Below, one piece after another: positions 3,369-45,574 of a stretch of DNA of 64,000 nucleotides. The number at the start of each line of letters is the position of its first letter. The stretch's first letter is position 1. The position numbers and the translations under genes were made by a program. The stretch covers positions 90,210,001-90,274,000 of the forward strand of contig NC_082712.1 of assembly GCF_030144855.1 (NCBI RefSeq). Direction: 5' to 3'. This stretch comes from Hypanus sabinus (lineage: Eukaryota). The notes under the pieces are model-generated. The model made no database searches and had not been told where the DNA came from. It was given only the letters and a program-made list of their open reading frames with translations.

Positions 3369-4990
3369 ACCATAAGACCATAAGATATAGGAACAGAAGT
3401 AGGCCATTCAGCCCATCGCATCTGCTCAGGCATTCAATCGTGGGCTGGTCCAATTCTTCCAGTCATCCCCACTCCCCTGCTTTCACCCCATAGCCTTTGA
3501 TGCCCTGGCTAATCAAGACCCTATCTATCTATGCCTTAAATACACCCAATGACTTGGCTTCCATAGCCACTTGTGGCAACAAATTCCACAGATTTACCAC
3601 CCTCTGACTAAAGTAACTTCTCCGTATCTCCATTCTAAAAGGACATCCCTCAATCCTGAAGTCGTGCCCTCTTGTTCTAGAATCCCCTACCGTGGGAAAT
3701 AACTTTGCCATATCTAATCTGTTCAGGCCTTTTAACATTCAGAATGTTTCTTTGAGATCCCCCCTCCTGCTCCTGAACTCCAGAGAATACAGCCCAAGAG
3801 CTGCCCGATGTTCCTCATACAGTAACCCTTTCATACCTGGAATCAGTTCCGTGAATCTTCTCTGAGCCCTCTTCAATGTCAGTATATCCTTTCTAAAATA
3901 AGGAGCCCAAAACTGCATCCAATATTCCAAGTGTGGTCTCACAAGAGCCTTATAGAACCTCAGCATCACATCCCTGCTCTTATATTCTATACCTCTAGAA
4001 ATGAATGCCAACATTGCATTCACCTTCTTCACCACCAACTCAACCTGGAGGTTAACCTTTAGGGTATCCTGCATGAGGACTCCCAAGTCCCTTTGCATCT
4101 CTGCATTTTGAAATCTCTTCCCATCTAAATAATAGTCTGCCTGTTTATTTCTTCCACTAAAGTGCATGACCATATAATTTCCCACGCTGTATTTCATTTG
4201 CCACTTTTTTGCCCATTCCCCTAAATTATCTAAGTCTCTCTGCAGGCTCTCTGTTTCCTCAACACTACCTGCTCCTCCACCTATCTATGTATCATTGGCA
4301 AATTTAACCACGAATCCATTAATACCATAGTCCCAGTCATTGACATACATTGTAAAAAGCAGTGGTCAACACCGACCCCTGTGGAACTCCACTGGTAACT
4401 GGCAGCCAGCCAGAATAGGATCCCTTTATTCCCACTCTCTGTTTTCTGCCAACCAGCTAATGCTCCACCCACACTAGTAACATCCCTGTAACTCTTATCT
4501 TGCTAAGCAGCCTCATGTGCGTCACCTTGTTGAAGGCCTTCTCAAAATCCAAGAGCACCTCATCTACTGCATCTCCTTTGTCTACCCTGCTTGTAATTTC
4601 CTCAAAGAGTTGCAGTAGGTTTGTCAGGCAGGATCTTCCTTTCAGGAAACCATGCTGGCTTTGGCCTATCGTGTCATGTGCCTCCAGGTTCTCCGTAATC
4701 TCATCCCTAGCAATCGATTCCAACAACTTCCCAACCACTGATGTCAGGCTAACAGGTCTATAGTTTCCTTTCTGCTGCCTCCCACCCTTCGTAAATAGTG
4801 GAGTAACATTTACAATTTTCCAGTCATCTGGTACAATGCCAGAATCTGTCGATTCTTGAAAGATCATCGTTAATGTCTCCTCAATCTTTCCAGCTACTTC
4901 CTTCAGAACCTGAGGGTGCATTCCATCAGGTCCAGGAGATTTATCCACCCTCAGACCGTTAAGCTTCCTGAGCACCTTCTTAGTCATAAC
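3369..4990 (-). mobile_element. CR1 LINE, 5'-truncated, degenerate ORF2
   Basis: KSPGPDGMHP, NYRPVSLTSVVGK, QHGFLKGRSCLTNL and LVRPHLEY motifs; accataagaccataag tail at 3369. Confidence 0.92.
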
Positions 4991-11569: not shown

Positions 11570-11896
11570 GTGAAAGAGATGTCTGGGCAAACTCCACAGA
11601 GGTCACAGTAAAAGCAGGGGAAAATCTAACCCTCCATTTTTCCCACAATCTGAAATGTTTTACATCTAATCTACACCTAACCTGGAAGCAAGACAGAAAC
11701 TTGGTTGCTTTCATGAGCGTTGGCCAGGAGCGACAAGTAAAACAGAACCTTGGTGTTTCGGCCAACTATATTAATGGAAATGCCACTCTGCTGCTACAAA
11801 ACATCACACCTTCCCAAGCAGGCAACTACACATGTTGCTTTAAAGATTACGCCTCCACTGAAGAACGTTGTGCGGTCATAAATGTTGTCATCACAG
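11570..11896 (+). CDS. Gene 1, IgV-domain exon (single-V IgSF protein)
   Basis: Acceptor ttcttttcatcctag|GT, donor ACAG|gtaact; 327 bp, phase 1-1, open: ERDVWANSTEVTVKAGENLTLHFSHNLKCFTSNLHLTWKQDRNLVAFMSV...NATLLLQNITPSQAGNYTCCFKDYASTEERCAVINVVIT. Shows C-strand Trp, E-strand LxLxNI and F-strand GxYxC. Confidence 0.9.
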
Positions 11897-11947
11897 GTAA
11901 CTTGGAATAGTCTTTGCTTCAGAATCGGGTTTATGATCACTGGCGTT

Positions 11948-12449
11948 CACTCAGTGGCCACGCTATTAGGTGCCTCTTGTTGCTACCTTATTAAGTTTGT
12001 GGTCTTCTGCTCCTGTAGCCCATTCACTTCAAGGTTCAATGTGTTAGATGCTCTTCTGCACAACACTGTTGTAACATTTGGCTACTTGAGTTACTGTCAC
12101 CTTCCTGTCAGCTTAAATCAGTCTGACCATTCTCCTCTGACCTCTCTCATTAACAAGGCGTGTTCACCCACAGAACTGCCGCTCACTGGCTGGTCTTTTA
12201 TGTGTTTTTCACACCATTCTCTGTAAACTCTAGGGACTGCTGTGTGTGAAAATCCCAGTAGGTCAGCAGTTTCTGAGATACTCAAACCACCCCATCTGGC
12301 ACCAACAGTCATTCCACGGTCAAAGTCACTTAGATCACATTTCTTCCCCATGTCTGTATGCTTTTGTGCTTAGAGTTGCTGCCCCATGATTGGCCAATTA
12401 GATATTTGCATTAACGAGCAGGTTTACCTAATAAAATGGCCACAGAATG
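11948..12449 (-). mobile_element. Tc1-like non-autonomous element
   Basis: TIR cactcagtggccac...tattaggt; HTH remnant MGKKCDLSDFDRGMTVGARWGGLSISETADLLGFSH; second copy at 55338-55890. Confidence 0.85.
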
Positions 12450-12989
12450 AATGTCAGAAAATATGTTGTTTTGCAGCAGCAGTATAGTGTAAGACAAAAA
12501 AAACTGTGTTCCAATAAAAAAAACTATAAATAAATAGATAAGTAGATAAATAACTAGTGCAGAATGAGGGATAGTCAGGAAGTGCTATGGGTTCAGCAAC
12601 CATTCAGAAATCTGCTGACAGGGAAGATGCCTCTCCTCAAAAGGGATGAGGAGCAATTTCTTTAGCCGGAAGCTGGTAAATCTGGAATTAATTGCCATGG
12701 ACAGCCGTGGAGGTCAAGTCATTGGGTATATTTAAAGAGGAGGTTGGTAGTTTCTTGATTAATCGGAGTGTCAAAGATTAGGAGGAGAAGGCAGAAGGTT
12801 TAGAGGGATAAAAAATCAGCCATGATCAAATGGCAGAGCAGACCATATTGGCTGAAAGGCCTAATTCTGTTTCCATGTGTAATGGAAGAAGCTGTTTCTA
12901 AAATGTTGCGTGTGAGTCTTCAGGCTCTTGTAACTCTTCCCCCCCCCCCCCCCCCCCCCGATGGTAGTACTGGCAATAGTAATCATTCT

Positions 12990-13460
12990 CCATAAGACAT
13001 AGGAGTAGAATTAGGCCATCTGGTCCATCAAGTCTGCTCTGCCGTTCAATCATGGCTGATCTTTTTTTTTTCCCTCTCCTCCTCAACCCCATTTCCTAGC
13101 CTTCTCCCCATAACCTTTGATGCCATGTCCAACCAAGAACCCATCAATCTCTGTCTTAAACAAACCCAACTTGGCCTCCACAGCTGCAAGTGTTAACAAA
13201 TTCCACAAATTTACCACCCTTTGGCTAAAGAAATTTCTCCGCATCTTTGTTTTGAAAGGGTACCCCTCTATCCTGAGGCTGTGCCCTCTTGTCCGAAACT
13301 CTCCCACCTCAGGAAACATCCTTTCCACATCTACTCTGTCAAGGCCTTTCAACATTTGAAAGGTTTCAATGAGATCCCACTCCCCCACCACCATCCTTCT
13401 GAATTCCAAAAATAACAGACCCAGAGCCATCAAACCCTTTCATTCCTGGAATCATCCTTA
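12990..13460 (-). mobile_element. CR1 LINE 3' fragment
   Basis: DLIETFQMLKGLDRV, RNFFSQRVVNLWN motifs; ccataagacatagg tail. Confidence 0.9.
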
Positions 13461-14176
13461 GATGCTGCCTGACTCACTGAGTTCCTCCAGTGCTTTATGT
13501 GCATTGCTCAAAACATCCATATCTGCAGTCTTTCTTGTGTCTATGAGATGCAGCCTGTCTTGCCTTATCAATAGATTCCTTATGGACAATACAAATCTTC
13601 ACAGACGCCCGTGTAAGTAGATCAGTCGATGCCCTTTCTTGATCGCCACATCAGCATAATATCATTGGCCATGAAGTTACAAGATGAGGAGAAACTTTTT
13701 CCCCAGAGAGTCATGTATCTGTGGAATTTCCTACCCAGGGAATCAGTAGAGGCTACCCCATTAAATATATTTAGGATGCAGTTAGATGGATCTTTGCCTA
13801 AATTAAGTTATGTCGAAGAGGAGGAGCCCATGACCAGATCAGACATGATCCTATGGAATAATAGAGCAGGCTCAACAGGCCAGGTGGCCAACTTGTGCTC
13901 CTATTTTTTTCTGCTCTTACAAAAATTGGTTGGACAGGTACACCAGCACTGGGGAGATGGCTACATGTTTGGGGAGTGGGGGGGGAGGGAATGGATAGCA
14001 GAGTGGGAGGGGTCAAAAGATTCCTGGTGTCTAATGGGGGGGGCACTGGGCTGCTCTCCAGGAGATAAAGCCATGCTTCTGCATCGTTTCTCTGCTAGTG
14101 GGTGGAGTGGAAATGGGAAGGGAACTCAGATCTTGAAGTGCCCGAATTTTCATCCAGTTTGTCTTCTCTCCAACAG

Positions 14177-14274
14177 AGAACTGGAGCGGCGCAGAATCAA
14201 CTCTGATTCACAATCACTCCATGTTAACCTTACTGCTGGTGGTTCTGTTCAGCTGTGTGATGACTCTGTGTTAA
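14177..14274 (+). CDS. Gene 1 terminal coding exon, putative GPI-anchor signal
   Basis: Acceptor ttgtcttctctccaacag|AG in phase 1 joins the V exon to give E-NWSGAESTLIHNHSMLTLLLVVLFSCVMTLC-TAA: small residues (SGA), a polar spacer, then a hydrophobic C-terminus with no cytoplasmic tail. The ORF track misses this frame. Confidence 0.8.
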
Positions 14275-14359
14275 AATGAAGATCTAGAGGAAGTCCGTGT
14301 AATTTTTCTCGAGCCTGTGAAGATGGAGTCTTGTACCTCATATTACTGATTACAGTGGA

Positions 14360-14380
14360 AATAAATCAACACAAAATAAA
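14360..14380 (+). terminator. Two AATAAA polyadenylation signals of gene 1
   Basis: AATAAA at 14360-14365 and 14375-14380, about 90-100 bp after the stop codon. Confidence 0.65.
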
Positions 14381-14395
14381 GTTGGTGAAACCAAG

Positions 14396-17180
14396 TGTAG
14401 CCCCCCCCCCCACCCTGGTAAGCCTCAGGCTCGCTCAGCTCACTTCCGTCTGGGGGGAGCAGTGATCAGTAGCTGCTGTTTGATTTTCTTCAGCCTCCTG
14501 CAATCGAGACATCAGCTTCTTCTCTGACTCCTCCAACTCTCGCCACAGTCTCAGCAGTTCTGACTCACGCTTCATGTTTATCTCCATCTGGAACACAGTT
14601 ACTCCACCAGCTTCTTGCACCCTGACCTGAAAAGCAGCCGTTAAAGATTGGTCAGCCTCCCGTTTAGTGTTCACTGAACTTATCTCCAGCTTTTTCTTCC
14701 TAATGACTTCTTCCAGGTCATCTTTCAGGTATCCCACTTCATTAATTGTTTGTCACCCGGGCTCCGGCACTCGCCTCGCATTATAGTTCCCCAAGGTGAA
14801 CGCAAACCGTAGACGATCGTCCACATACATCAAAACTCCAAACACCTCCACATCCCCCATGGTCTTCCACATGCCCTGCTGGAAGGTTGCAAGGACTCTG
14901 GATATGCCCTGTGGCATCTTTTTGGACCGGAAGAATCCTAGAGGACCTATAATGGCCGTCTTCTCCTTGTCGGCCTCACTCATCGGGATCTGGCAACATC
15001 CACTCCTCAGATCCAGCACCCTAAACCACTTTGCACCACTCAGACAGACCATCGCCTCTTCGGCCCTCAGGACAGTATTCTGGTCAATGACAGAGAGCCT
15101 GTTCAGAGTCCTATAATCCACACACACACTGCCTACATCTTCCATGGGGCCAGTTGCCACGACCTCTCTCTCACTGAGGTGTCTTCAGCAGTCAACTCCC
15201 CTCCCTCGTGGTATTTCAGAGCGTCCACTAAGAGGGACTCACCCTCAGGCACTCCCCCGAGGCTGTACCACCACCAGCTCTCGTTTAAATTTGGTACCGG
15301 CCCAATGCTGCTACACATGTCCTCACAAGCAGCTCGAAACACTGGGTGCACAGGCAATGCCTCCAAACAGCGCTCATCCGCCTCCTCCTGGCAGGCCCCC
15401 ATGTGCCTCCTTACCAGCGGGGTGTTGGTTCCCTCCAGAATCGAAACGCTGCCCATCTCGACAGTGTCCGGACACATCAGCATTAATGATTCACGAACCT
15501 CAGTCACCCCCAAATTGGCCTCCAAGAACTCCAGTTTCACTGACCAATAACCGTCATCTGGATAATCACCAGCACTGGTATCCTAAATCTCCAGTTGCCC
15601 TCAATGTTGACAGGGGTAAATGCTTCAAATACCGGTTGTAAAATGAACTGTACAGCAACTTGACCTGCGCCCCGGTGTCGAGGAGGGCTTTAGCGTAGCT
15701 ACCATCCATCCGTAACAACACCCGAGTGCATGGTCCCTCTAAGCCTTCAGGAAGAGGGTCTGTTCCTTTCAGGAGTTCCTTGGTACATTGCTGAGAACAT
15801 GCGACCCCAAGCCATTCCCCCACTAGGCCTCCTCTAAGTTTCCTGACACCGCTCAGATCAGCTGAACAACTGAGGGAGGGGCTGATCCCCCTGGCACCAC
15901 AAACAATTTATGCCCCCCCCCCCCAAGCCAAAGAAGATACCCTGAAAACTTTCCACCAATCTCCTGAAACAGATATGGTAAGTCCCCCAGCTGCGGCATT
16001 TTACTTCCAGTTGAACTAAACACATTTTCCCCCGCTTTCAGATAACTGGCTGTTGTCACTTTGAGGTAATTGGACCAGACAGATCTAACAACATCACCAG
16101 CCTGCCTACTCAAATTTCCAATCAATCCCTGTCGCTTTCCCTCAGCCAAGTACTGCCAAACACCTAACAACTGAGAGATCCGCTCTGCCCATGCCTACAC
16201 CCCTTTAGGGCTGGACATTATTCCAATAGCCGGTCTACCATAGCTGAAACATTCCGACCAGTATTTCCTCTCTATCCCAACAGTATGAACAGCCTATGGT
16301 CCCACCACCATTTCCTGCTGGTCTAAACTCGAACAACAACCCCCAGGGTACCAACCACCACCCCACCCAACATGCATGCAGTGATAACCAGCAATCGCAC
16401 ACCAGTTTTCCGTCCCCGCAGCATGCATAATTTAAAGAGGGCGATCACACAGCTTCCACAAAATCCAATCCCAGATGAGCCCCCACAATGTAGCCCCCTG
16501 GTAAGCCTCAGGCTCGCTCAGCATGCTGCCGTCTAGGGGGAGCAGCCTTTAGCCCCGCCAAACTGGGTAATCAGCTTGTGTAGATGCTGTGTGATGTCCT
16601 CACCACGCCAAATCACAGACAGTACACCGTATGCAATTAAATTATTACACTTTATAGATCGTACTGGAACAATGTAATTAATAGAGATACAAAAGTAAAG
16701 GAAAGTAAACGGAGCCAAACTTATCAAAGTCCAACCATTTCATGCATAACTGTTGGAGCTCAGTTAACGAAGTCTTCTTGCCACCATTCGATCCCCTCTG
16801 ACCTCGACCCGCCACCTCAGACCAACAACGGTTGTCGACCAGACACAATCCACATGAATCTGTCCTCATCTCCTCTCCTCGCCTAAACCCTGGGCTTCAG
16901 ACCCCCGCTCAGGATCCGTTCTGTCGCCCAGCTTACAGCATCACGTCTCCTCTCTCTATCCCCATTGTGCCTTCTCCCCAAAGCCCGCGAAACAATTGCT
17001 TACAGACCCACAAGAAAGAATAACATCTATCCCAATTGGTTAACAAATGGATACAATTCTCGTTATCAGTAATTATAACCCAAACAAGCTGTGAGAGAAA
17101 AGCACTTTCTCTGCAGTTACCATAACAAAGAAGCATTTTTATTAGCCTTAACAGTAACATAAAAGAAGAAATCCCTTTCA
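14396..17180 (-). mobile_element. Internally deleted Gypsy/Ty3 LTR retrotransposon (element B)
   Basis: Perfect 4-bp TSD CAAG (14392-14395, 17181-17184). 5' LTR 16489-17180; tRNA-Pro-like PBS at 16468-16485 (rc TGGGGGCTCATCTGGGAT); protease ALLDTGAQV (15566-15823); RT with [14 protein letters not shown] and YVDD (14753-15160); only about 67 bp of the 3' LTR remain (14396-14462). Confidence 0.9.
14463..14752 (-). pseudogene. Captured sarcomeric myosin heavy-chain rod fragments (MYH16-like) inside element B
   Basis: Open frame QTINEVGYLKDDLEEVIRKKKLEISSVNTKREADQSL..RVQEAGGVTVFQMEINMKRESELLRLWRELEESEKKLMSRLQEAEE. It matches three separate rod segments as recalled ([76 protein letters not shown]). 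Paralog identity needs BLAST. Confidence 0.75.
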
Positions 17181-17472
17181 CAAGATAATTGTTTGCCTTT
17201 ATAACACCATAAGACACAGGAGCAATATGAACCGCTTTGACTCATTGAGTCTCTTCCGCCATTCGATCATGGTTGATTTACTATCCCTCTCAACCCCATT
17301 CTCCTGCCTTCTCCCTGTAAACTTTGATGCCCTTGCTAATTAGGAACCTATTAAGCTCGACTTTAAATTTATCCAGTGACTTGACCTCCACTGCTGTCTG
17401 TGGCAATGAATTCCACAGATTCACCAAATCCTAGCTAAAGAAATTCCTCCTCATCTCTGTTCTAAAGGGACG

Positions 17473-19173
17473 TGCAACACTCGCTTCAGCTAGCGGCTTA
17501 ACCTTGGGGGTGATAACCACCTCACCATGCCTGACTAAACCTAATAAGTCTTGTTTGGGTGGATATTGCACGATGTGTCCCCTGTTTCAAATCAGTACCC
17601 AGAAATAACGAACAGTACATATTATGTGGTTAAACGATTAAGATGTCCCTCATGAGATTCATGCAGAAAGTCATGAGGCATGGGATAAGTGGAACCTTGG
17701 CTGTTTGGATAAAAAATTGGCTTAAAGGAAGAAAGCAGAGGGTATTTGTGGAAGGAAAGTATTCTGCCTGGAGGTCGGTGACTAGTGGAGTGCCGCAGAG
17801 ATCTGTCCTGGGACCCCTGCTATTTGTGATTTTTATAAATGACCTGGATGTAGAGGCAGAAGAATGGGTAAGTTTGCGGATGACACAAAGATTGGAGGAG
17901 TTGTGGTTGGAGCTGTAGGTGGTCGAAGGTTACAAGAGGATATAGACAGGCTGCAGAGTTGGGCAGAAAAATGGCAGATGGAGTTCAATCCGGACAAGTG
18001 TGAGGTGATGCATTTTGGAAGGACAAACCAGAAGACTGAGTACAGGATTAACGGTCAGTTACTTAAGAGTGTGGATGAACAAAGGGACCTTGGGGTTCAA
18101 ATCCATACATCCCTCAAGGTTGCTGCACAAGTTGATAGGGTAGTTAAGAAGGCCAAAGGGTTGCTAGGCTTCATTAACAGGGGGATTGAGTTCAAGAGTA
18201 GAGAGATCATGTTGCAACTCTACAAATCTGGTGAGATCACACTTAGACTATTGTGTTCAATTCTGGTCACCTCATTATAAGAAGGATGTGGAAGGAAGGG
18301 TGCAGAGGAGATTTATTAGGATGTTGCCTGGATTGGAGAACAAGTCATATGAATCAAGTTTAGCAGAGCTGGGACTTTTCTCTTTGGAGCGTAGAAGAAT
18401 AAGAGGGGACTTGATAGAGGTTTACAAGATTATGAGAGGCATAGATAGGGTGGATAGTCAGTACTTGTTTCCCAGGGCACCAAGAGCAAACACCGGAGGG
18501 CATAGGTACAAAATTAAGGGAGAGAAGTTTAGGGGAGACATCAGGGGTAAGTTTTTTACACAGAGGGTTGTGAGTGCCTGGAATGACTTGCCAGGGATGG
18601 TAGTGGAGGCTAAAACATTAGGAGTATTTAACAGCCTCTTGGACAGACACATGGATGAAAGAAAAATGGAAGCTTATGGGGTAGTGTGGGTTTAGTACTT
18701 TTTTTATTAAGGATTATATGGGTTGGCACAAGATGGAGGGCTGAAGGGCCTGTACTGTGCCGTAGTATTCTATGGCTCTATGTATAACTCTGACTGTGTG
18801 GTTAGTAGAGAACAAAATATGAAAGAAAAAGATGCCAATCTTATTAGAACAGTCTGCGCACAAATTGTTGGAGCTCACTCAGCAAGATCTTCTGTCCACC
18901 ATTCGATCTCCAATGGGTGTTGACGAACCCCGCGCTCCCGCCCGGAGTCCACCCGGTCGGGCAGCCCGCCGTCTCGCTCAAGTCGCGTCTCCTCACTTCA
19001 TTCCCCTCACACCTGCTGGCAAAAGCCCGCAAAGCCAACAGCTTTCTGACACACAAGGAAGAAAACCATTTCTCCCATTGGATAGCCAACCGTTATCTTT
19101 AGTTATAACCCAAACATTACCGCTACAGAGAAACCATTACCTCAGCAGTTAACATTACAGAGAAGCCCTTACA
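17473..19173 (-). mobile_element. Solo LTR related to the element B LTR, inserted in a minus-strand CR1 and itself interrupted by a CR1
   Basis: TG...CA termini (tgcaacac...cccttaca); 4-bp TSD GACG (17469-17472, 19174-19177); 18860-19173 resembles the other LTR copies. Confidence 0.75.
17645..18780 (+). mobile_element. CR1 LINE, 5'-truncated
   Basis: [41 protein letters not shown] and FFTQRVVSAWN motifs. Confidence 0.92.
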
Positions 19174-24300: not shown

Positions 24301-27300
24301 ACCTGTAACCCCCTGGGTCACCTCAGGCTCGCTCAGCTCGTTCCCGTCTAGGGGGAGCAGCCTTCGGCCCCGCCAAACTGGGTAATCAGCTGGTGTGGAT
24401 GCTGTGTGATGTCCCCACCTCGCCCAAAACCAGACAGTACACCATAAGCGATTAAATGAGTACAATTTATAAAGGTTACTATAACTAAGTGATTAATAAT
24501 GATACAGTATATATGAAGAGAAAAAAATAAAGAAAAGGCGCCAAACTTATCAAAGTCCAAACCACTTCGTGCACAACCGTTGGAGCTCAATTACTGAAGT
24601 CTTCTGGCCACCATTCGCTCCCCTCCGAACTCCTCGACTCGCAGCTCAGGACCCTCCGAGTGGTCAACCAAGCACATCTAGCTTCATCCCCCCTCCTCGG
24701 AGTACCTCCTGGCCTCGGACCCCCGCTTGGGGTCCGATCCTCACCCAGCTTACAGCATTGCGTCCTCTCTCTCACACCCCCTCGCGCCGATCTGCCCAAA
24801 AGCCCGTCAACAACCGCTTACAGACTCAGAAGAAAGAACAACATTAATCCCCATTTGGTTTACAAAGGAATACAATTCTCGTTATCAGTAAATTTTAACC
24901 CAAACAAGCTTCCAGCACTCTCTCGCAACAAAGGAGCATTCCTGCTTTTAACAAAACAAAGAAGCCCTTTCCCAACAAGCTTCCAGCACTCTCTCACAAC
25001 AAAGAAGCATTCCTGCTAGTTAACAAAACTAAGAAGCCCTTTTGATTACATACACAGTAACAAAGAAAAAAGAAGAAACCCCCTTTACGCACCCTTAGCC
25101 AGGAGGGACTTTATGGAGGCACAGGGTAAAGATGAGAAACAGATAAGGCAGTTAGAAGGTCCAGGGTTGGACACGGATGATCTGTCTGGCTTGACAGAGC
25201 AGTTTGCAGTTGAAGAATTTAAATGTGTTCCCGATAATGATGTATGGCTGTCCTAGATGAAAAGGATGCCGCTACCTTGAGGGAGTCTGCTGGGTTAGCA
25301 GACAAGGTTGTTTTAACCCGCAAGGTTGAGTTTACTCCAGATGGAAGGTGCCCAGAGAGTAACTGGGAGGATCAGAGGAATTTAGGATTTGAAAAGGGGA
25401 CTGGTATTGAAAGCCTGGAAGAGGTAGGTGTCCCGTTTGCGTGTGTTCAGGGTGTGAAGGGTGTGGATGCACAGGGTACTGAACCTAGTATTGAAACTCA
25501 GGAAAAGTCTGCGGTATCTGATTTAGTTGAAAAGGAATGCAGTCCTTTTGGGTCAGATGGACTTGGTTCAGTGAAGAAAGGGTTAACCTTGGTACCAGTG
25601 GAAAGTGACAATTCTCAGTTGTTTGTGTTAGAAGGTGTGTTAAAAATTAATGATGAGATAAAAGCTGGTGATGTGACTATTATTGAAGGAGAAGGGAAAG
25701 GTGTTGTTCCTGAATTGAATAAAGAAAATTTAAAGTCTGAATTGGTTTCAGAAGGATTGACAAAAGGGAAGGGACCATTAACTGAACAATGGCCTGTGAA
25801 CAAGGTGCCTGTGAATCAATTACAATTTGTTTGGAAATTTAAAGATAAACAACTTGCTGATGTTATTCAAGTATGTGATTTGGAGAGGCAGAACTTGAAA
25901 TGTTGTTTTGACCAAGAGGGATCATCTGCTGCTGTTAAACTGAAAACAAATAGAATGAAAGATCCTAAAGATAAAATTAATGACTTGCTTAAAATTAACA
26001 AATTATGTGGAAGTTCAACAAATGGGCTTAGTTTGGAAAACATTGGTGATAAGATAGCTCCTGTGAAAGGAGACTGTGAAGGCCTATTCCACACTGGTGA
26101 GCAAGCTAACCACGTGAGAGTTCAGTGGAAAAGGGACAAAGGTTGACCAAATGCCACTTTGAATAACAGGATCTGGTTTTGAGGGAATTTGACAAAGCAT
26201 GTGAAAGATAAAAACACCATGGAAGATTGACTGTTTGAATGTTAAGTTTAAAAGTAAAATAGAGATTAGTATTTGCACAAACTTTTGTAATGTGCTATAT
26301 TATAATCACGCATGTATTGGTTCACACTTTGTAATATACACCTAAGCTAAGAACACAACCCCTTTAGAATTTTTTTAACATGAAAAGTAAAAAGTAGGCG
26401 ATTATTAAATTGGAGTCTGTTGTTACAGGAATTCAATATTAAAATACAACATGTAAAGGGGAGTGATAATGTTATTGCTGATTATTTATCTAGATGTTAA
26501 TTTTAACGTGTATCTGTATTATTCATGTAGTTAAGACAACTTTTGTATTTTGTTAAACTCTGTAATTCAGTTATGTGCTTTATTAGTTAATTTTCCCCCT
26601 GGTGAAAATTCCCAGAAGGATGGGGGTGTTATGAGTGATGAACAGACCTGATGGACAATGAGGTAAAGAGTTAATCATTCCCCCCCTGAGAAACACGAAC
26701 TATTACTGTTGCTATGCTGACCATGAGAAAGAGACGAAAAACAGGCAAGAACATCCGCGACAGATAAGAGAGAGGGGGAAATTGCTGATTAACCATATTG
26801 TGATTCTTTTTTGAATTATTTACTGTTTCGCTGCAAGGCCAATAGTTTGCTCAATAACATTCCTCAGTGGACTGCAGGAGTGGTCTAATTTGATGAACAC
26901 AGTCATTCAGAATTGATGGATAGCTGAGACCCCGTGAGTAGGGATAAAAAGACAGGTCTGGAGAGACACCCTCCAGACACGCCAGTGGACACTGATTGAG
27001 TGTTGAAACCCACAAGAAAGGTGGGGGCTTCGGAGACCGAATCAGGAGATCGGTCAGTAAATCTCACAGTGTAACAGCAGGGCCGGTGGGGACTTGTGTG
27101 TGTGTCCACTCATGCCAGAATGACGAGTCCACCACAGAAGAACGGTATGGCTGAAGACCAGAGGGGTCATAACTGAATGACCGCAACAATACGACGGATT
27201 AAGAAAGCAAAGGAAAGTTTGGCTGCTGTAGCTGTTACATCTCGCTCTCTCTCTCTCTCTCTCCCGCTCCAACGATTACAACTCAACAAGCATAACTACC

Positions 27301-28130: not shown

Positions 28131-31100
28131 CTGGGGTTCACGTGATGTCATGCCATTGATCGGGCGCTTCCCTGAATAACTCCTACAAAATGTTCTTTAC
28201 AACCTGTTTATAAGGCTCTTACATAACTTTAACAAAAGCGATGGTTAAAAGGAAAAATCATGGAAATCCTACTGGCGCTAGTGCTGCTGGCCCCGCACTC
28301 CCGGGGGCATATGGAGTTCAGAGACACGAGAGCGATAATAAGGCCTGATCATCGGACGGTTCCTCCGAGCCTGCAGAAGACTGCAGCAGCACGACGCAGT
28401 GCTGGCTCAGGCAGTGACCTCGCGGCCATGATTCATGAGTTGACCGATGCAGTCCGGACTTTAACCAGTAGGATGGACAAGTTCGAGAGTCACTTAGACC
28501 TTATCATTCAAGAATCTAAGGAAATGAAGCAGACTTTGGAATCTTTAAATTTGCGAGCCCAGGATTTAGAAAATAATATGAATGATGTTCTGAATAGATT
28601 ACAAAGCCTGGAAAAAGAAAAAGATTCCTGGAGGATTGAGAAAGTAAAAATAATGGATAAACTGGGCTCTCTTGAAAACTATAGAAGAAGAAATAATATC
28701 AAAATAGTGGGTTTAAAAGAGTGACTGGAAGGAAGAGACGGAGAAACTTTCTTTCAAGAATGGATTCCCAAAGTTCTGGGGAAAAAGCATTTTGACAAAG
28801 AATTAATTATAGAAAGGGCACACAGGACTTTACAACCCCGACCACTTCCACAGCAAAGGCCGCGTCCTATACTTATACGCTTTTTGAAGTATCGAGATAA
28901 ACAAAAAGTATTACGAGCTGCAGCAACAGAGGCCAGAGAGAGAAATAGCCTATTAGAGTTTACAGGGGGAAAGATATTCTTCTTTCCAGATATTAGTGTG
29001 GCCTTGTTAAGAAAAGAGAAAGACTTTGGCTTAACAAGGAGCGTAGTAAAGAATAAAGGTCTTCAATATTCTTTATTATACCCAGCAAAGCTGAGAATTA
29101 CTCTGTCTAATGGAGGGAGGAAATTTTTTACTAACCCCCAGGAGGCGATAAACTTTTTTCAAAATATCTGAGACATCGTGATTCCGAAGATCTTCTGGAA
29201 CAAGCTTAGAAAGATGTATTTTGGACAAAATATATGAAGAAGATTATTTGATTTTCTTTATTAATATAGATTAACTTTAACAACATTATAGTCTTGAACT
29301 TTGAATCAATATGATTATGGATGAAGACTATTATGATTTAAAATATTGAACTTAAAATCCATGTGATTATGGATGGAAATCACTAGGACTATTAATTTCC
29401 TATTAAGTCTATATAGGTTTTTTTTCTTTCTGGATCCTTTTGAATTATACTACTTAGGAACTATGTAGTTTATCTAATTTTGTTATAACTAGTATGAATC
29501 ATTTTGATTATATAGATATCATTTTTGATATGTTTAATTTTTTGTATGCTGGATATGTATTAAATAATAATATTTAAGGTTATATTTAGAAGTTTCTTTG
29601 AATTCTCTTCTTTATTTGGATATACTGCTATATTAATGATATTTGCTTTCAATATTATAGATTAGTTAGATATTTAGTAATAATGGGTGTGGAATATAAT
29701 TTAGTTTTTTTACAGATGTTTAATTAAGGAGTTATTAGGGACTGGATCATCTTTTTTCACTTTTTTAAAAAAAAAGATTAATTATGTTACATGCTAAAGA
29801 ATGTCCATCTTTAGTGCAATGTTTATTGGACCCCACAGTAAGAGGGGTTAAGGCCCCGTGGACTTGGAGCGCCAGTTGGGAGGGTTTTTCTCCTTTTTTT
29901 TTTCTTTTTTTTTAATTTCTTTTTTTCTTTTATTTTCTTTCCTCTCTGGTTTCCTTTCTATTTTCTATACTCTATTGAGAAAGGCACCAAATATCTCAGA
30001 GGCACTCAAAGAAATGGGATTAATTTATATTTTTTTTGTAGACAGGATTTATCAACTAATAAAATCTGATAACTATGAATAGAGCAATTAAATTTTTAAG
30101 TCTTAATGTTAATGGGATAAATGGACCGATAAAAAGGAAAAAAGTCTTGGCATATCTCAAAAAATATCATATTAATATTAACTTTCTTCAAGGAACTCAT
30201 CTTACAGTGACAGAACAGAACAAGTTAAAGAGAGGATGGGTTGGTCAAGTAATAGTGTCCTCCTTTAATTCTAAAGCCAGAGGAATGGCAGTATTGATAG
30301 GGAAGAATTTGCCAGTGAAAGTGGAGGGTACTATCATAGATCCAGCCGGGAGATTTGTTATGGTCAATTGTCAAATATATTCAGAGTTCTGGACACTTTT
30401 GAATTTATATGCCCCCAATTATGATGACGAGAAATTTATTCAAAATATTTTTCTGAAACAAGGATATGAAAATATCTTAATTGGAGGGGATTTCAATGTT
30501 TGTCTGGATCCAATTTTAGACAGATCAGTTAAAAAAGTCATGAAGGTCATGGCAGCAAAAACCACCCTGGCCTTCATGAAAGACTTGAATATAATAGATG
30601 CTTGGAGTTGGCACCATCCAAGGGAAAGAGACTACTCTTTCTATTCAAAACAATATGATTCCTACTCTAGAATTGACTTATTCCTAATATCAGCTAAATT
30701 AGAAAGTAGGATCATTCAAACAGAATATGCTATTAGACTACTCTTGGATCATTCACCTTTAATTTTATCACTTGAAATGCCTGATAAACAAAAAACATTA
30801 TATAGGTGCCGTTTTAATCTTTTGCTGTTGAAAAGACAAGGAGCTTGCAGTTTTATTAGAGCTCAATTAGAACTGTTCTGTGAGATGAACTCTCCCTCTA
30901 CTGCCAATAATATTTTATTATGGGATACATTAAAAGCTTATTTAAGAGGACAAATAATTGAATATGTTAAGGGTATAAAAAATAAATATGTAACAGAATT
31001 AAATGTATTGGAGAAAGACTCATCGAAAATTGATGATTTCTTGTCTAATTTACAACTTCCCAAATTGGGTCAACAAGATCAGGAAGAATTAAATGCCCCT

Positions 31101-43275: not shown

Positions 43276-45574
43276 ACCAATTATTTCCCAAAGCAACAGG
43301 GAGCCGCAGCACAGACGTAAAAGAGCCACATGTGGCTCCGGAGCCGCGGGTTGCCGACCCCCGGACTAGGCTAATACTCACTGGAATTTAGAAGATTGAG
43401 GGGGGATCTTATTGAAACATATTAAATTCTAAAGGGATTGGACAGGCTAGATGCAGGAAGATTGTTTCCAATGTTGGGGAAGTCCAGAACAAGGGGTCAC
43501 AGTTTAAGGATAAAGGGGAAGCCTTTAGGACTGAGATGAGGAAAAACTTCTTCACACAGAGAGTGGTGAATCTGTGGAATTCTCTGCCACAAGAAGCAGC
43601 TGAGGCCGGTTCATTGGCTATATTTAAGAGGAAGTTAGATATGGCCCTTGTGGCTAAAGGGATCGGGGCTATGGAGAGAAAGCCGGTACAGGGTTCTGAG
43701 TTGGATGATCAGCCATGATCATACTGAATGGCGGTGCGGGCTTGAAGGGCCGAATGGCCTACTCCTGCACCTATTTTCTATGTTTCTATGAATGGTGTCG
43801 TTAGGAAAAGGGGAAGTACAACGAGATCTAGGTGTTCTTGTATATCAGTCACTGAAAGTAAGCATGCAGGTACAGCAGGCAGTGAAGAAAGCTAATGGCG
43901 TGTTGGCCTTCATAACAGGGGGAGTTGAGTATAGGAGCAAAGAGGTCCTTCTGCAGCTGTACAGGGCCCTGGTGAGACCACACCTGGAGCATTGTGTTCA
44001 GTTTTGGTCTCCAATTTTGAGGAAGGACATTCTTGCTATTGAGGGAGTGCAGCATAGGTTCACAAGGTTAATTCCCGGAATGGCGGGACTGTCATATGTT
44101 GAAAGATTGGAGTGACCGGGCTTGTATACACTGGAACATAGAAGGATGAGAGGGGATCTGATTGAAACATATAAGATTATTAAGGGATTGGACATGTTAG
44201 AGGCAGGAAACATGCCCTGGATGTAGGGGGAATCCAGAACCAGAGGCGACAGTTTAAGAATAAGGAGTAGGCTATTCAGAACGGAGTTCAGGAAAAACTT
44301 TTTCGCTCAGAGAGTTGTGGATCTGTGGAATGTTCTGCCTCAGAAGGCAGTGGAGGTCAATTCTCTGGATGCTTTCAAGAAAGAGTCACCACCCAGGCGA
44401 GGCACCTAACCGCAGCGGCACCCTCGCGCCAGGATCACCGGTCGGCCTCGGGCAACCGGCGCCTCGCGCGGCCGGCGGGAAGCGCCGTTGGTACCGGCCC
44501 GGAGCGCGGACGGGTGGCGCCGCCTCCAAACCTCTTCACCACACCGAATGGTCGTGGGGAACCCGGTGCTAAAATATTCGCAGACGACCGAATTCGGGCT
44601 CAGGGTTTCGGAAGAAGCAGAGCAGCTACCTCGCTGCGATGGACTGAAAGTCACCCCTCGGCCGGTAGATCCTACAAGCGAGGCAGGCGGGCGGGCGGGC
44701 GGGCGCCCTGCCGCTCTCCCCGCTCGGTCGGTCACTCTCTCCGGACTGCGATCGCTGCGGCTCCGGCCCTGACCTCGTCCTCTCACCCCACCCACGGCCA
44801 GCCGCACCTGGCCAAGGCCTCGGGCGGCGGGCGGGAGGCTGTCGAATGAGGCAATGAAGCCTCAGAACTGCTTCGGTACCTTGAGTCCAAGCGCCCTGCA
44901 CTTAAAGACAAACCCGTTGAGTTTTTTGAGCGGAAAAAAACGTGAGCAAGCGGGACAGAAGCAAGTGTTGAGAGTCATGAAAACCAAATTGTGGAATAGA
45001 CATAAGGAACCTCCTTCGAGTATTGCTGTACTCCGGTCGTGTTTAACATCCCCCACCCCGCCCCCAGCCATCGGCCGGTCCGCAAGAATATTATCAATAT
45101 TAAACCGGTACACGGTGCAAAAAAGGTTGATGACCCCTGATCTATGGAGGGAAATAATTTTTGAAGTAAATAGTAAACACAGGGGAGCCTGCAGAATCCA
45201 GAGTAATACACACACAAAATGCTGGAGGAACTCATCTGGTCAGGCAGCATCTAACCAGAAGGGGTTGATTAAGCATTCTTGTTTGTTTAAATAATTCATT
45301 ATGGGTCATCCAGAGCAACAGACAAAATATTGGAGGAACTCAGCAGGTCAGACAGCATCTAAGCACAAGAGATTCTGCAGATGCTGCCTGACCTGCTGAG
45401 TCTGAAATCCAGACCAACACACACAATGCGTTGGAGGAACTCAACAGGTCAGGCAGAACCTAAACTCAAATTCTGCAGATGCTGCCTGACCTGCTGAGTT
45501 CCTCCAAAATTTTCTGTTAATCAAAGCAAATTTATTAGTCATTTTGAGTTACCTACCACCCCATTATCCTCACA

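Follow-up and report, generated by a model that had tools for sequence, protein, structure and literature searches.

The genome of the stingray Hypanus sabinus contains, at positions 11570–11896 of a stretch of 64,000 nucleotides (nt) (NCBI RefSeq assembly GCF_030144855.1, contig NC_082712.1, positions 90,210,001–90,274,000 of the forward strand; the whole stretch is hereafter called the window, and positions refer to it unless the locus of another species is named), an exon encoding an immunoglobulin V-set (IgV) domain without the cysteine (Cys) expected in strand B. A first-pass annotation, made from the letters of the window alone, had joined this exon to a terminal exon starting at 14177 and described the product as a CD160-like receptor with a single IgV domain and a glycosylphosphatidylinositol (GPI) anchor, in which the missing Cys reflected either a different disulfide arrangement or a recent allele or early pseudogenisation. 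What does this gene encode, to which proteins is it related, and is the loss of the Cys genuine? Very probably, the locus is a conserved elasmobranch gene encoding a signal peptide, two IgV domains (domain 1 and domain 2), and a C-terminal signal of the GPI-attachment type, and the B-strand Cys of domain 2 was replaced in an ancestor of the rays.

Architecture and conservation of the gene

The features of the gene that lie within the window and carry this reading are as follows.

11570–11896, + strand: exon of domain 2 (the membrane-proximal V-set domain), 327 nt, phase 1-1; Pfam V-set match and identity to a RefSeq protein
11638–11640, + strand: TTT, Phe at the canonical B-strand Cys position; from the codon and the ortholog alignment
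11656–11658, + strand: TGT, Cys of the BC loop, C155 in the 266-aa isoform and part of the invariant motif C-F; unchanged in five of five orthologs
11833–11838, + strand: TGT TGC, CC doublet of strand F, made up of the canonical F-strand Cys (Ser in Mobula) and an invariant second Cys
11869–11871, + strand: TGT, invariant Cys at the start of strand G; from the ortholog alignment
14177–14274, + strand: terminal coding exon with a candidate omega site S-G-A, a 9-aa polar spacer, a 17-aa hydrophobic tail, and the stop codon TAA at 14272–14274

When exon 11570–11896 was used as the query of a HMMER search against 1.8 billion representative proteins, the search led to a 280-amino-acid (aa) protein of H. 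sabinus, XP_059831128, which RefSeq names “coxsackievirus and adenovirus receptor homolog isoform X2.” The exon is identical to residues 141–248 of this protein, whose final 32 residues agree exactly with the predicted splice product. The exon and the tail exon are the last two coding exons of the RefSeq models XP_059831127–32, in which the 5′ end alone distinguishes isoforms X1 (290 aa), X2 (280 aa), and X3 (266 aa), and the junction 11896/14177 is exactly that of three RefSeq isoform models. Read in phase 1, the exon has no stops and encodes 108 aa, a domain that passes the Pfam V-set model (PF07686) with 28.9 bits against a cutoff of 26; it is preceded by a pyrimidine-rich acceptor (ttcttttcatcctag/GT) and followed by a consensus donor (CAG/gtaact). 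The terminal exon also has a good acceptor (tcttctctccaacag/AG) and encodes E-NWSGAESTLIHNHS and then 17 hydrophobic residues up to the TAA. The Pfam match, the splice sites, and the RefSeq models that use the junction thus bear out the first-pass annotation in its view that the V-set exon is real and is spliced to the exon at 14177.

The same annotation had described a single IgV domain. However, residues 1–139 of XP_059831128 comprise a signal peptide and a canonical IgV domain, domain 1, which had no match anywhere within the 64-kb window. Because these residues are unmatched there and the Hypanus gene spans 49 kb, the first coding exons must lie upstream of the window start, and the single domain is an artefact of the window edge. 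The same circumstance explains why a leader exon (ATG, hydrophobic core, and phase-1 donor), sought in the window upstream of 11570, yielded nothing convincing: the leader, like domain 1, is encoded beyond the window edge.

Orthologs with the same architecture and intact open reading frames (ORFs) were found in the stingray Hemitrygon akajei (89% identity), the devil ray Mobula hypostoma (71%), the sawfish Pristis pectinata (54%), and the sevengill shark Heptranchias perlo (38–40%); no relatives beyond these five species, Hypanus included, were found. Two IgV domains are present in all Hypanus isoforms and in all five orthologs. In the loci of Pristis and Heptranchias, domain 1, domain 2, and the tail occupy one exon each, in the same order, with domain 1 recovered as one tblastn block in each species and its exon located 4–10 kb upstream of the domain 2 exon. 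The domain 2 exon of Pristis is likewise 327 nt long with the same splice sites, and conservation in both loci extends to exon length, phases, and splice sites.

Relationship to the B7/butyrophilin family

For domain 2, AlphaFold2 (AF2) gave a model with a predicted local distance difference test score (pLDDT) of 84 and a predicted template modelling score (pTM) of 0.79, showing a complete nine-strand V fold, in which A, A′, B, C, C′, C″, D, E, F, and G are all formed. In Foldseek comparisons, the IgV domains of PD-L1 and BTN3A1, T-cell receptor (TCR) V domains, and MPZ ranked first, with template modelling scores of 0.74–0.81 (0.74–0.78 for the PD-L1 IgV domain), and VIA-align gave Z scores of 15–17 to TCR V domains. 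At the sequence level, a profile search of the PDB with domain 1 placed CD276 first (3e−17), followed by pIgR and butyrophilins (BTN2A1, 2e−9), and the corresponding search with domain 2 had CD276 (1e−7) and VTCN1 (2e−4) among the best full-length matches. Judged from these sequence profiles and structural models, both domains look most like the IgV domains of the B7/butyrophilin family.

For both domains, the best full-length sequence and fold matches are to members of this family (CD276/B7-H3, VTCN1, PD-L1, BTN2A1/3A1, and MOG), and the likeness extends to the motif G-N-A-(S/T)-L-x-L … G-x-Y-x-C and to V domains encoded by single phase-1 exons. In contrast, B7 proteins have the order IgV, IgC, and transmembrane segment, whereas the stingray protein has two IgV domains and a GPI-type tail, with neither the IgC domain nor the transmembrane segment; moreover, unlike B7 domains, domain 2 lacks the B-strand Cys and has three extra invariant Cys.

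The AF2 model of the two domains together was less confident (pLDDT 72), and its best matches were JAML, CD226, and single-chain variable fragments, all of which are V-V pairs. The ectodomain would therefore resemble that of JAML or CD226 in its tandem V-V layout, but with no transmembrane segment or cytoplasmic tail. Although JAML and CD226 share this layout and rank first among structural matches to the two-domain model, they have transmembrane and signalling tails and canonical disulfides, unlike the stingray protein, and their sequence likeness to it is generic (approximately 18–20% identity). The gene, which is already annotated in RefSeq under a misleading automatic name, is therefore treated here as a B7-like V-V family without a name of its own, so far recorded in elasmobranchs only. 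Literature searches on CD160 or GPI anchors in cartilaginous fish, and on V-set domains there that lack the canonical disulfide, yielded nothing on this V-V family.

Loss of the B-strand Cys in domain 2

Codon 11638–11640 is TTT (Phe) and is located seven residues after a conserved Gly and 15 residues before the C-strand Trp. This Phe stands opposite the B-strand Cys of CD276 in the HMMER alignment and opposite that of domain 1 of the same protein in an hhalign comparison; the first-pass annotation was therefore correct in placing Phe where a B-strand Cys is expected. Between G-E and the BC-loop C-F, both of which are invariant, the five orthologs align without gaps. At the canonical B-strand position, Hypanus, Hemitrygon, and Mobula have Phe, Pristis has Tyr (TAC), immediately preceded by a Cys (TGT), and Heptranchias has Cys (TGC). 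This comparison of orthologs at 11638–11640, which the first-pass annotation had named as a way to distinguish a genuine Phe from a misassembled Cys, excludes an assembly error.

The C-strand Trp and the F-strand Cys are both present in domain 2 of Hypanus, so what is missing from the canonical B-F disulfide is its partner in strand B. The F-strand position is occupied by Cys in Hypanus, Hemitrygon, and Pristis and by Ser in Mobula, which is what an orphaned partner would be expected to show. On the evidence of the aligned sequences, the loss of the B-strand Cys is common to all four batoids and is old. The Cys would have been changed to an aromatic residue in an ancestor of the rays, with Tyr now found in the sawfish and Phe in stingrays and devil rays.

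When domain 2 of Hypanus was compared with that of Hemitrygon, Mobula, Pristis, and Heptranchias, the identities were 86, 73, 51, and 36%, respectively, and the corresponding values for domain 1 were 90, 70, 65, and 45%; domain 2 diverges about as fast as domain 1. Between Hypanus and Pristis, domain 2 had a nonsynonymous divergence (dN) of 0.34 and a synonymous divergence (dS) of 0.57 (dN/dS 0.59; Fisher p of 0.04 for the synonymous excess). The ORFs and tails are intact in all five orthologs, as are the splice sites, and the locus looks like a fast-evolving but constrained immune-type gene rather than a pseudogene.

Remaining Cys residues and a possible disulfide network

The four remaining Cys and the five N-glycosylation sequons (NST, NLT, NAT, NIT, and NYT) of domain 2 are all present as originally described. 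Three of these Cys are invariant in the five species, namely, C155 in the BC loop, C215 (the second of the doublet), and C226 at the start of strand G (numbering of the 266-aa isoform), and the fourth varies in position, being C214 in the two stingrays and C225 in Mobula, with both present in Pristis. In domain 1, an extra Cys, C29, directly precedes the conserved Gly and is invariant, and a further Cys in strand G (residue 116 of P0152) is kept in Mobula, Pristis, and Heptranchias and is Tyr in Hypanus and Hemitrygon. This G-strand position aligned with C226 of domain 2 in hhalign, which suggests that the two V exons may be old duplicates. With the signal peptides as read here, the mature ectodomain contains 10 Cys in Heptranchias, 10 in Pristis, eight in Mobula, eight in Hemitrygon, and seven in Hypanus. 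Hemitrygon has gained a Cys in the C strand of domain 2 (NLC-LTW), by which its Cys count is even again, and the count in Hypanus is odd.

The invariant non-canonical Cys point to a putative rewired or interdomain disulfide network, in which C29, C155, C215, and C226 would form replacement bridges. Such bridges could connect the BC loop to the F/G hairpin, as do the bridges between complementarity-determining regions 1 and 3 (CDR1 and CDR3) in IgNAR type II, or domain 1 to domain 2, or both. Because the number of ectodomain Cys in Hypanus is odd, one thiol may stay free, possibly for covalent dimers, as proposed for Cys87 of CD160.

Known V domains offer partial parallels. IgNAR type II and camelid VHH domains have extra disulfides with Cys at CDR1 and CDR3 positions, and domain 2 of the stingray protein similarly has Cys in the BC loop (the CDR1 position) and in the FG loop/G strand (the CDR3 position). 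However, those bridges are added to an intact canonical disulfide in rearranging antigen receptors, whereas the stingray gene is a germline, non-rearranging gene whose domain 2 lacks the B-strand Cys. The N-terminal V domains of the CD2 family and of CEACAM proteins fold without the canonical disulfide; these domains are N-terminal and mostly free of Cys, whereas the stingray domain is membrane-proximal and has other conserved Cys. CD160 is, as the stingray protein probably is, a GPI-anchored IgV protein with a Y-x-C-C doublet, of which the second Cys is invariant in the family described here. In CD160, bridges are reported to connect Cys18 to Cys86 and Cys35 to Cys42, with Cys87, the second Cys of the doublet, free (PMC6355189). 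CD160 has only a single domain and retains the canonical Cys18–Cys86 bridge, whereas in rays the canonical partner is missing. By analogy, the invariant second Cys of the doublet may have a role like that of Cys87, as a free thiol or in an interchain bond, which would be a functional parallel and not a sign of kinship.

The C-terminal tail

The small-residue triplet, polar spacer, and terminal hydrophobic run constitute the textbook layout of a GPI signal. We checked the tails by rule, that is, for small residues at the omega and omega+2 positions, a polar spacer of 5–10 aa, a terminal hydrophobic run of 15–20 aa, and no cytoplasmic residues, and the Hypanus tail (S-G-A, ESTLIHNHS, and 17 hydrophobic residues) agreed with all of these. 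In the five orthologs, a hydrophobic run of 17–23 aa is located at the very C-terminus, with a polar spacer before it and no basic or cytoplasmic residue after it, and the S-G-A triplet is common to Hypanus, Hemitrygon, and Heptranchias. An indel of a single codon separates the Hypanus tail from that of Pristis. The nearest cluster according to a protein language model was Thy-1 (score 0.96), which, like CD48/CD58, is a small GPI-anchored protein of the immunoglobulin superfamily. The GPI-type tail that had been read from the stingray sequence thus recurs in layout in all five orthologs, with S-G-A also in a distant shark, and the protein probably has a lipid (GPI) anchor. The mature protein would then be a heavily N-glycosylated surface ligand or co-receptor, anchored in lipid rafts and signalling only through partners.

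In Heptranchias, isoform X1 (17234–17254, 25619–25705, and 30385–30489 of that locus) has a different C-terminus in place of the GPI-type tail, with no terminal hydrophobic run, and could be a soluble isoform or an annotation artefact.

Intron, 3′ end, and surrounding sequences

Two further features of the gene lie in the window.

11897–14176, + strand: intron of 2,280 nt, filled with transposon remnants; conserved with Pristis over approximately the first 25 nt
14275–14400, + strand: short 3′ untranslated region with AATAAA at 14360–14365 and 14375–14380; the end of the region is a predicted one

The corresponding intron is approximately 2.3 kb in Pristis and approximately 1.5 kb in Heptranchias. 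At its 5′ end, 22 of 25 nt are identical between window positions 11897–11925 (gtaacttggaatagtctttgcttca) and positions 30668–30692 of the Pristis locus (gtaaattggaatagtctttcgttca), unlike the domain 2 exon, which is only 70% identical between stingray and sawfish; these first 25 nt may be a conserved splicing element. The intron also contains a 77-aa ORF (12118–12351, − strand), which we take to resemble the N-terminal DNA-binding part of a Tc1/mariner transposase (…DFDRGMTVGARW…SISETADLLGFSHT…), and a run of 22 C at about 12941–12962. The two AATAAA signals are located 86 and 101 nt 3′ of the stop codon, and directly 3′ of them is an ORF with the reverse-transcriptase motif YVDD (14753–15160, − strand), part of a Gypsy-like element.

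When the window was compared by tblastx with the Pristis and Heptranchias loci for synteny, only transposon matches were obtained besides the domain 2 exon. Window positions of approximately 3460–4365, 18284–18671, 43806–44385, and 49592–50335 had many matches in the sawfish and sevengill loci, with 47–74% aa identity, and presumably are copies of a retroelement family that is widespread in elasmobranchs. In the Pristis locus, a gene at positions 383–2620 (− strand), upstream of the ortholog, encodes a protein with a SPRY domain and a SOCS box (SPSB-like), which is a possible synteny marker with which to place the V-V family.

Alternative explanations

Could the unusual features of this gene be explained in another way? 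The RefSeq name implies a true ortholog of the coxsackievirus and adenovirus receptor (CAR, CXADR) or another member of the CTX/JAM group, and indeed CXADR and CLMP were among the fold matches of the two-domain model and CAR gave weak PDB matches (E values of 5e−3 with the whole protein and 1e−7 with the domain 1 profile). However, the matches to the B7 family were much stronger, domain 2 is a V-set and not a C2 domain, and the protein ends in the hydrophobic run, with no transmembrane segment or cytoplasmic tail. In addition, CTX-family V domains are split over two exons, whereas domain 2 is a single 327-nt exon, also in Pristis, and domain 1 is a single block in Pristis and Heptranchias. CAR or CTX/JAM identity, which fails on the C2 second domain, on the transmembrane segment and the cytoplasmic tail with its PDZ-binding end, and on the split V exon, is thus hardly tenable. 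We give equally little credence to the idea of a CD160-like receptor that has one IgV domain, a GPI anchor, and a new disulfide pattern. In its favor are the V-set fold, the YxCC doublet, and the GPI-type tail, the last two of which have counterparts in the CC doublet and GPI anchor of CD160, but the public models and the four orthologs have a second, N-terminal IgV domain, which refutes this architecture. Kinship with CD160, as the first-pass annotation had proposed, was also sought by sequence and fold against the PDB and was not found: CD160 was absent from the best 60 PDB sequence matches (E up to 10; whole protein, domain 2, and both domain profiles) and from the best 50 fold matches, the best of which were instead B7/butyrophilin proteins, pIgR, TCR V domains, and JAML.

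It is very unlikely that the Phe stems from misassembly, represents a recent allele, or marks the onset of pseudogenisation, although TTT is one base from TGT, the number of ectodomain Cys in Hypanus is odd, and in Hypanus and Hemitrygon a Cys of domain 1 has also changed, to Tyr. Because the loss of the Cys is common to the four batoids, with Phe in Hypanus, Hemitrygon, and Mobula, which represent two families of Myliobatiformes, and Tyr in Pristis, an assembly error or a recent allele is excluded; against incipient decay are the intact ORFs, splice sites, and tails of all five orthologs, a domain 2 that evolves no faster than domain 1, and the dN/dS of 0.59. Therefore, of the two options that the first-pass annotation had left for the missing Cys, a different Cys arrangement fits better, and a recent allele or early pseudogenisation does not fit a Phe shared by three ray genera with intact ORFs and splice sites. 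A different alternative retains the gene and domains as described here and concerns only the tail, which would be a minimal transmembrane anchor without a cytoplasmic tail. Hydrophobic runs of 17–23 aa are long enough to span a membrane, and Pristis and Mobula show poor conservation of the omega triplet; however, no ortholog has a basic stop-transfer or cytoplasmic residue, three species, the distant shark among them, have a small-residue triplet 7–10 residues upstream, polar spacer and tail are as long as in a textbook GPI signal, and the language-model neighbor is Thy-1. We consider such an anchor unlikely, though with an appreciable chance of being correct.

Several observations weigh against the conserved two-domain, GPI-anchored protein that we favor. 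Support for its splicing comes from RefSeq models and conservation, and the family is known from five species only, with no skate, galeomorph shark, or chimaera among them. The dN/dS value indicates no more than modest purifying selection on domain 2, and the omega triplet is weaker in Mobula (S-G-T) and Pristis (S-D-M or N-L-G). The register of the F/G hairpin differs by one residue between the two AF2 models, and for this reason, we claim no pairing of Cys. Finally, the change of the G-strand Cys of domain 1 to Tyr in Hypanus and Hemitrygon could mean that the network is relaxing and has not been redesigned.

Implications

These results correct two labels, as the gene encodes neither a CAR homolog nor a CD160-like receptor with a single domain. 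They overturn nothing that is known about the immunoglobulin superfamily; the oddity of domain 2 is real and old but only moderately unusual. A more far-reaching proposal, which we regard as doubtful, is that this is an elasmobranch-restricted family of GPI-anchored, tandem-IgV, B7-like proteins, in which the domain 2 disulfide of rays is functionally replaced by a non-canonical network (possibly with a bridge between domains 1 and 2 or a free Cys for dimers), and that the protein is the ligand of a neighboring single-IgV receptor, for example, the product of the CD28-family gene 38 kb downstream, at 52.7–59.3 kb. The gene adds a candidate ligand to the stingray cluster of CD28-like and B7-like genes. 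Furthermore, with Cys in the shark, Tyr in the sawfish, and Phe in stingrays and devil rays, it provides a dated natural case of a V domain without the core Cys bridge, and thus a usable case for how immunoglobulin domains tolerate or compensate for the loss of the canonical disulfide.

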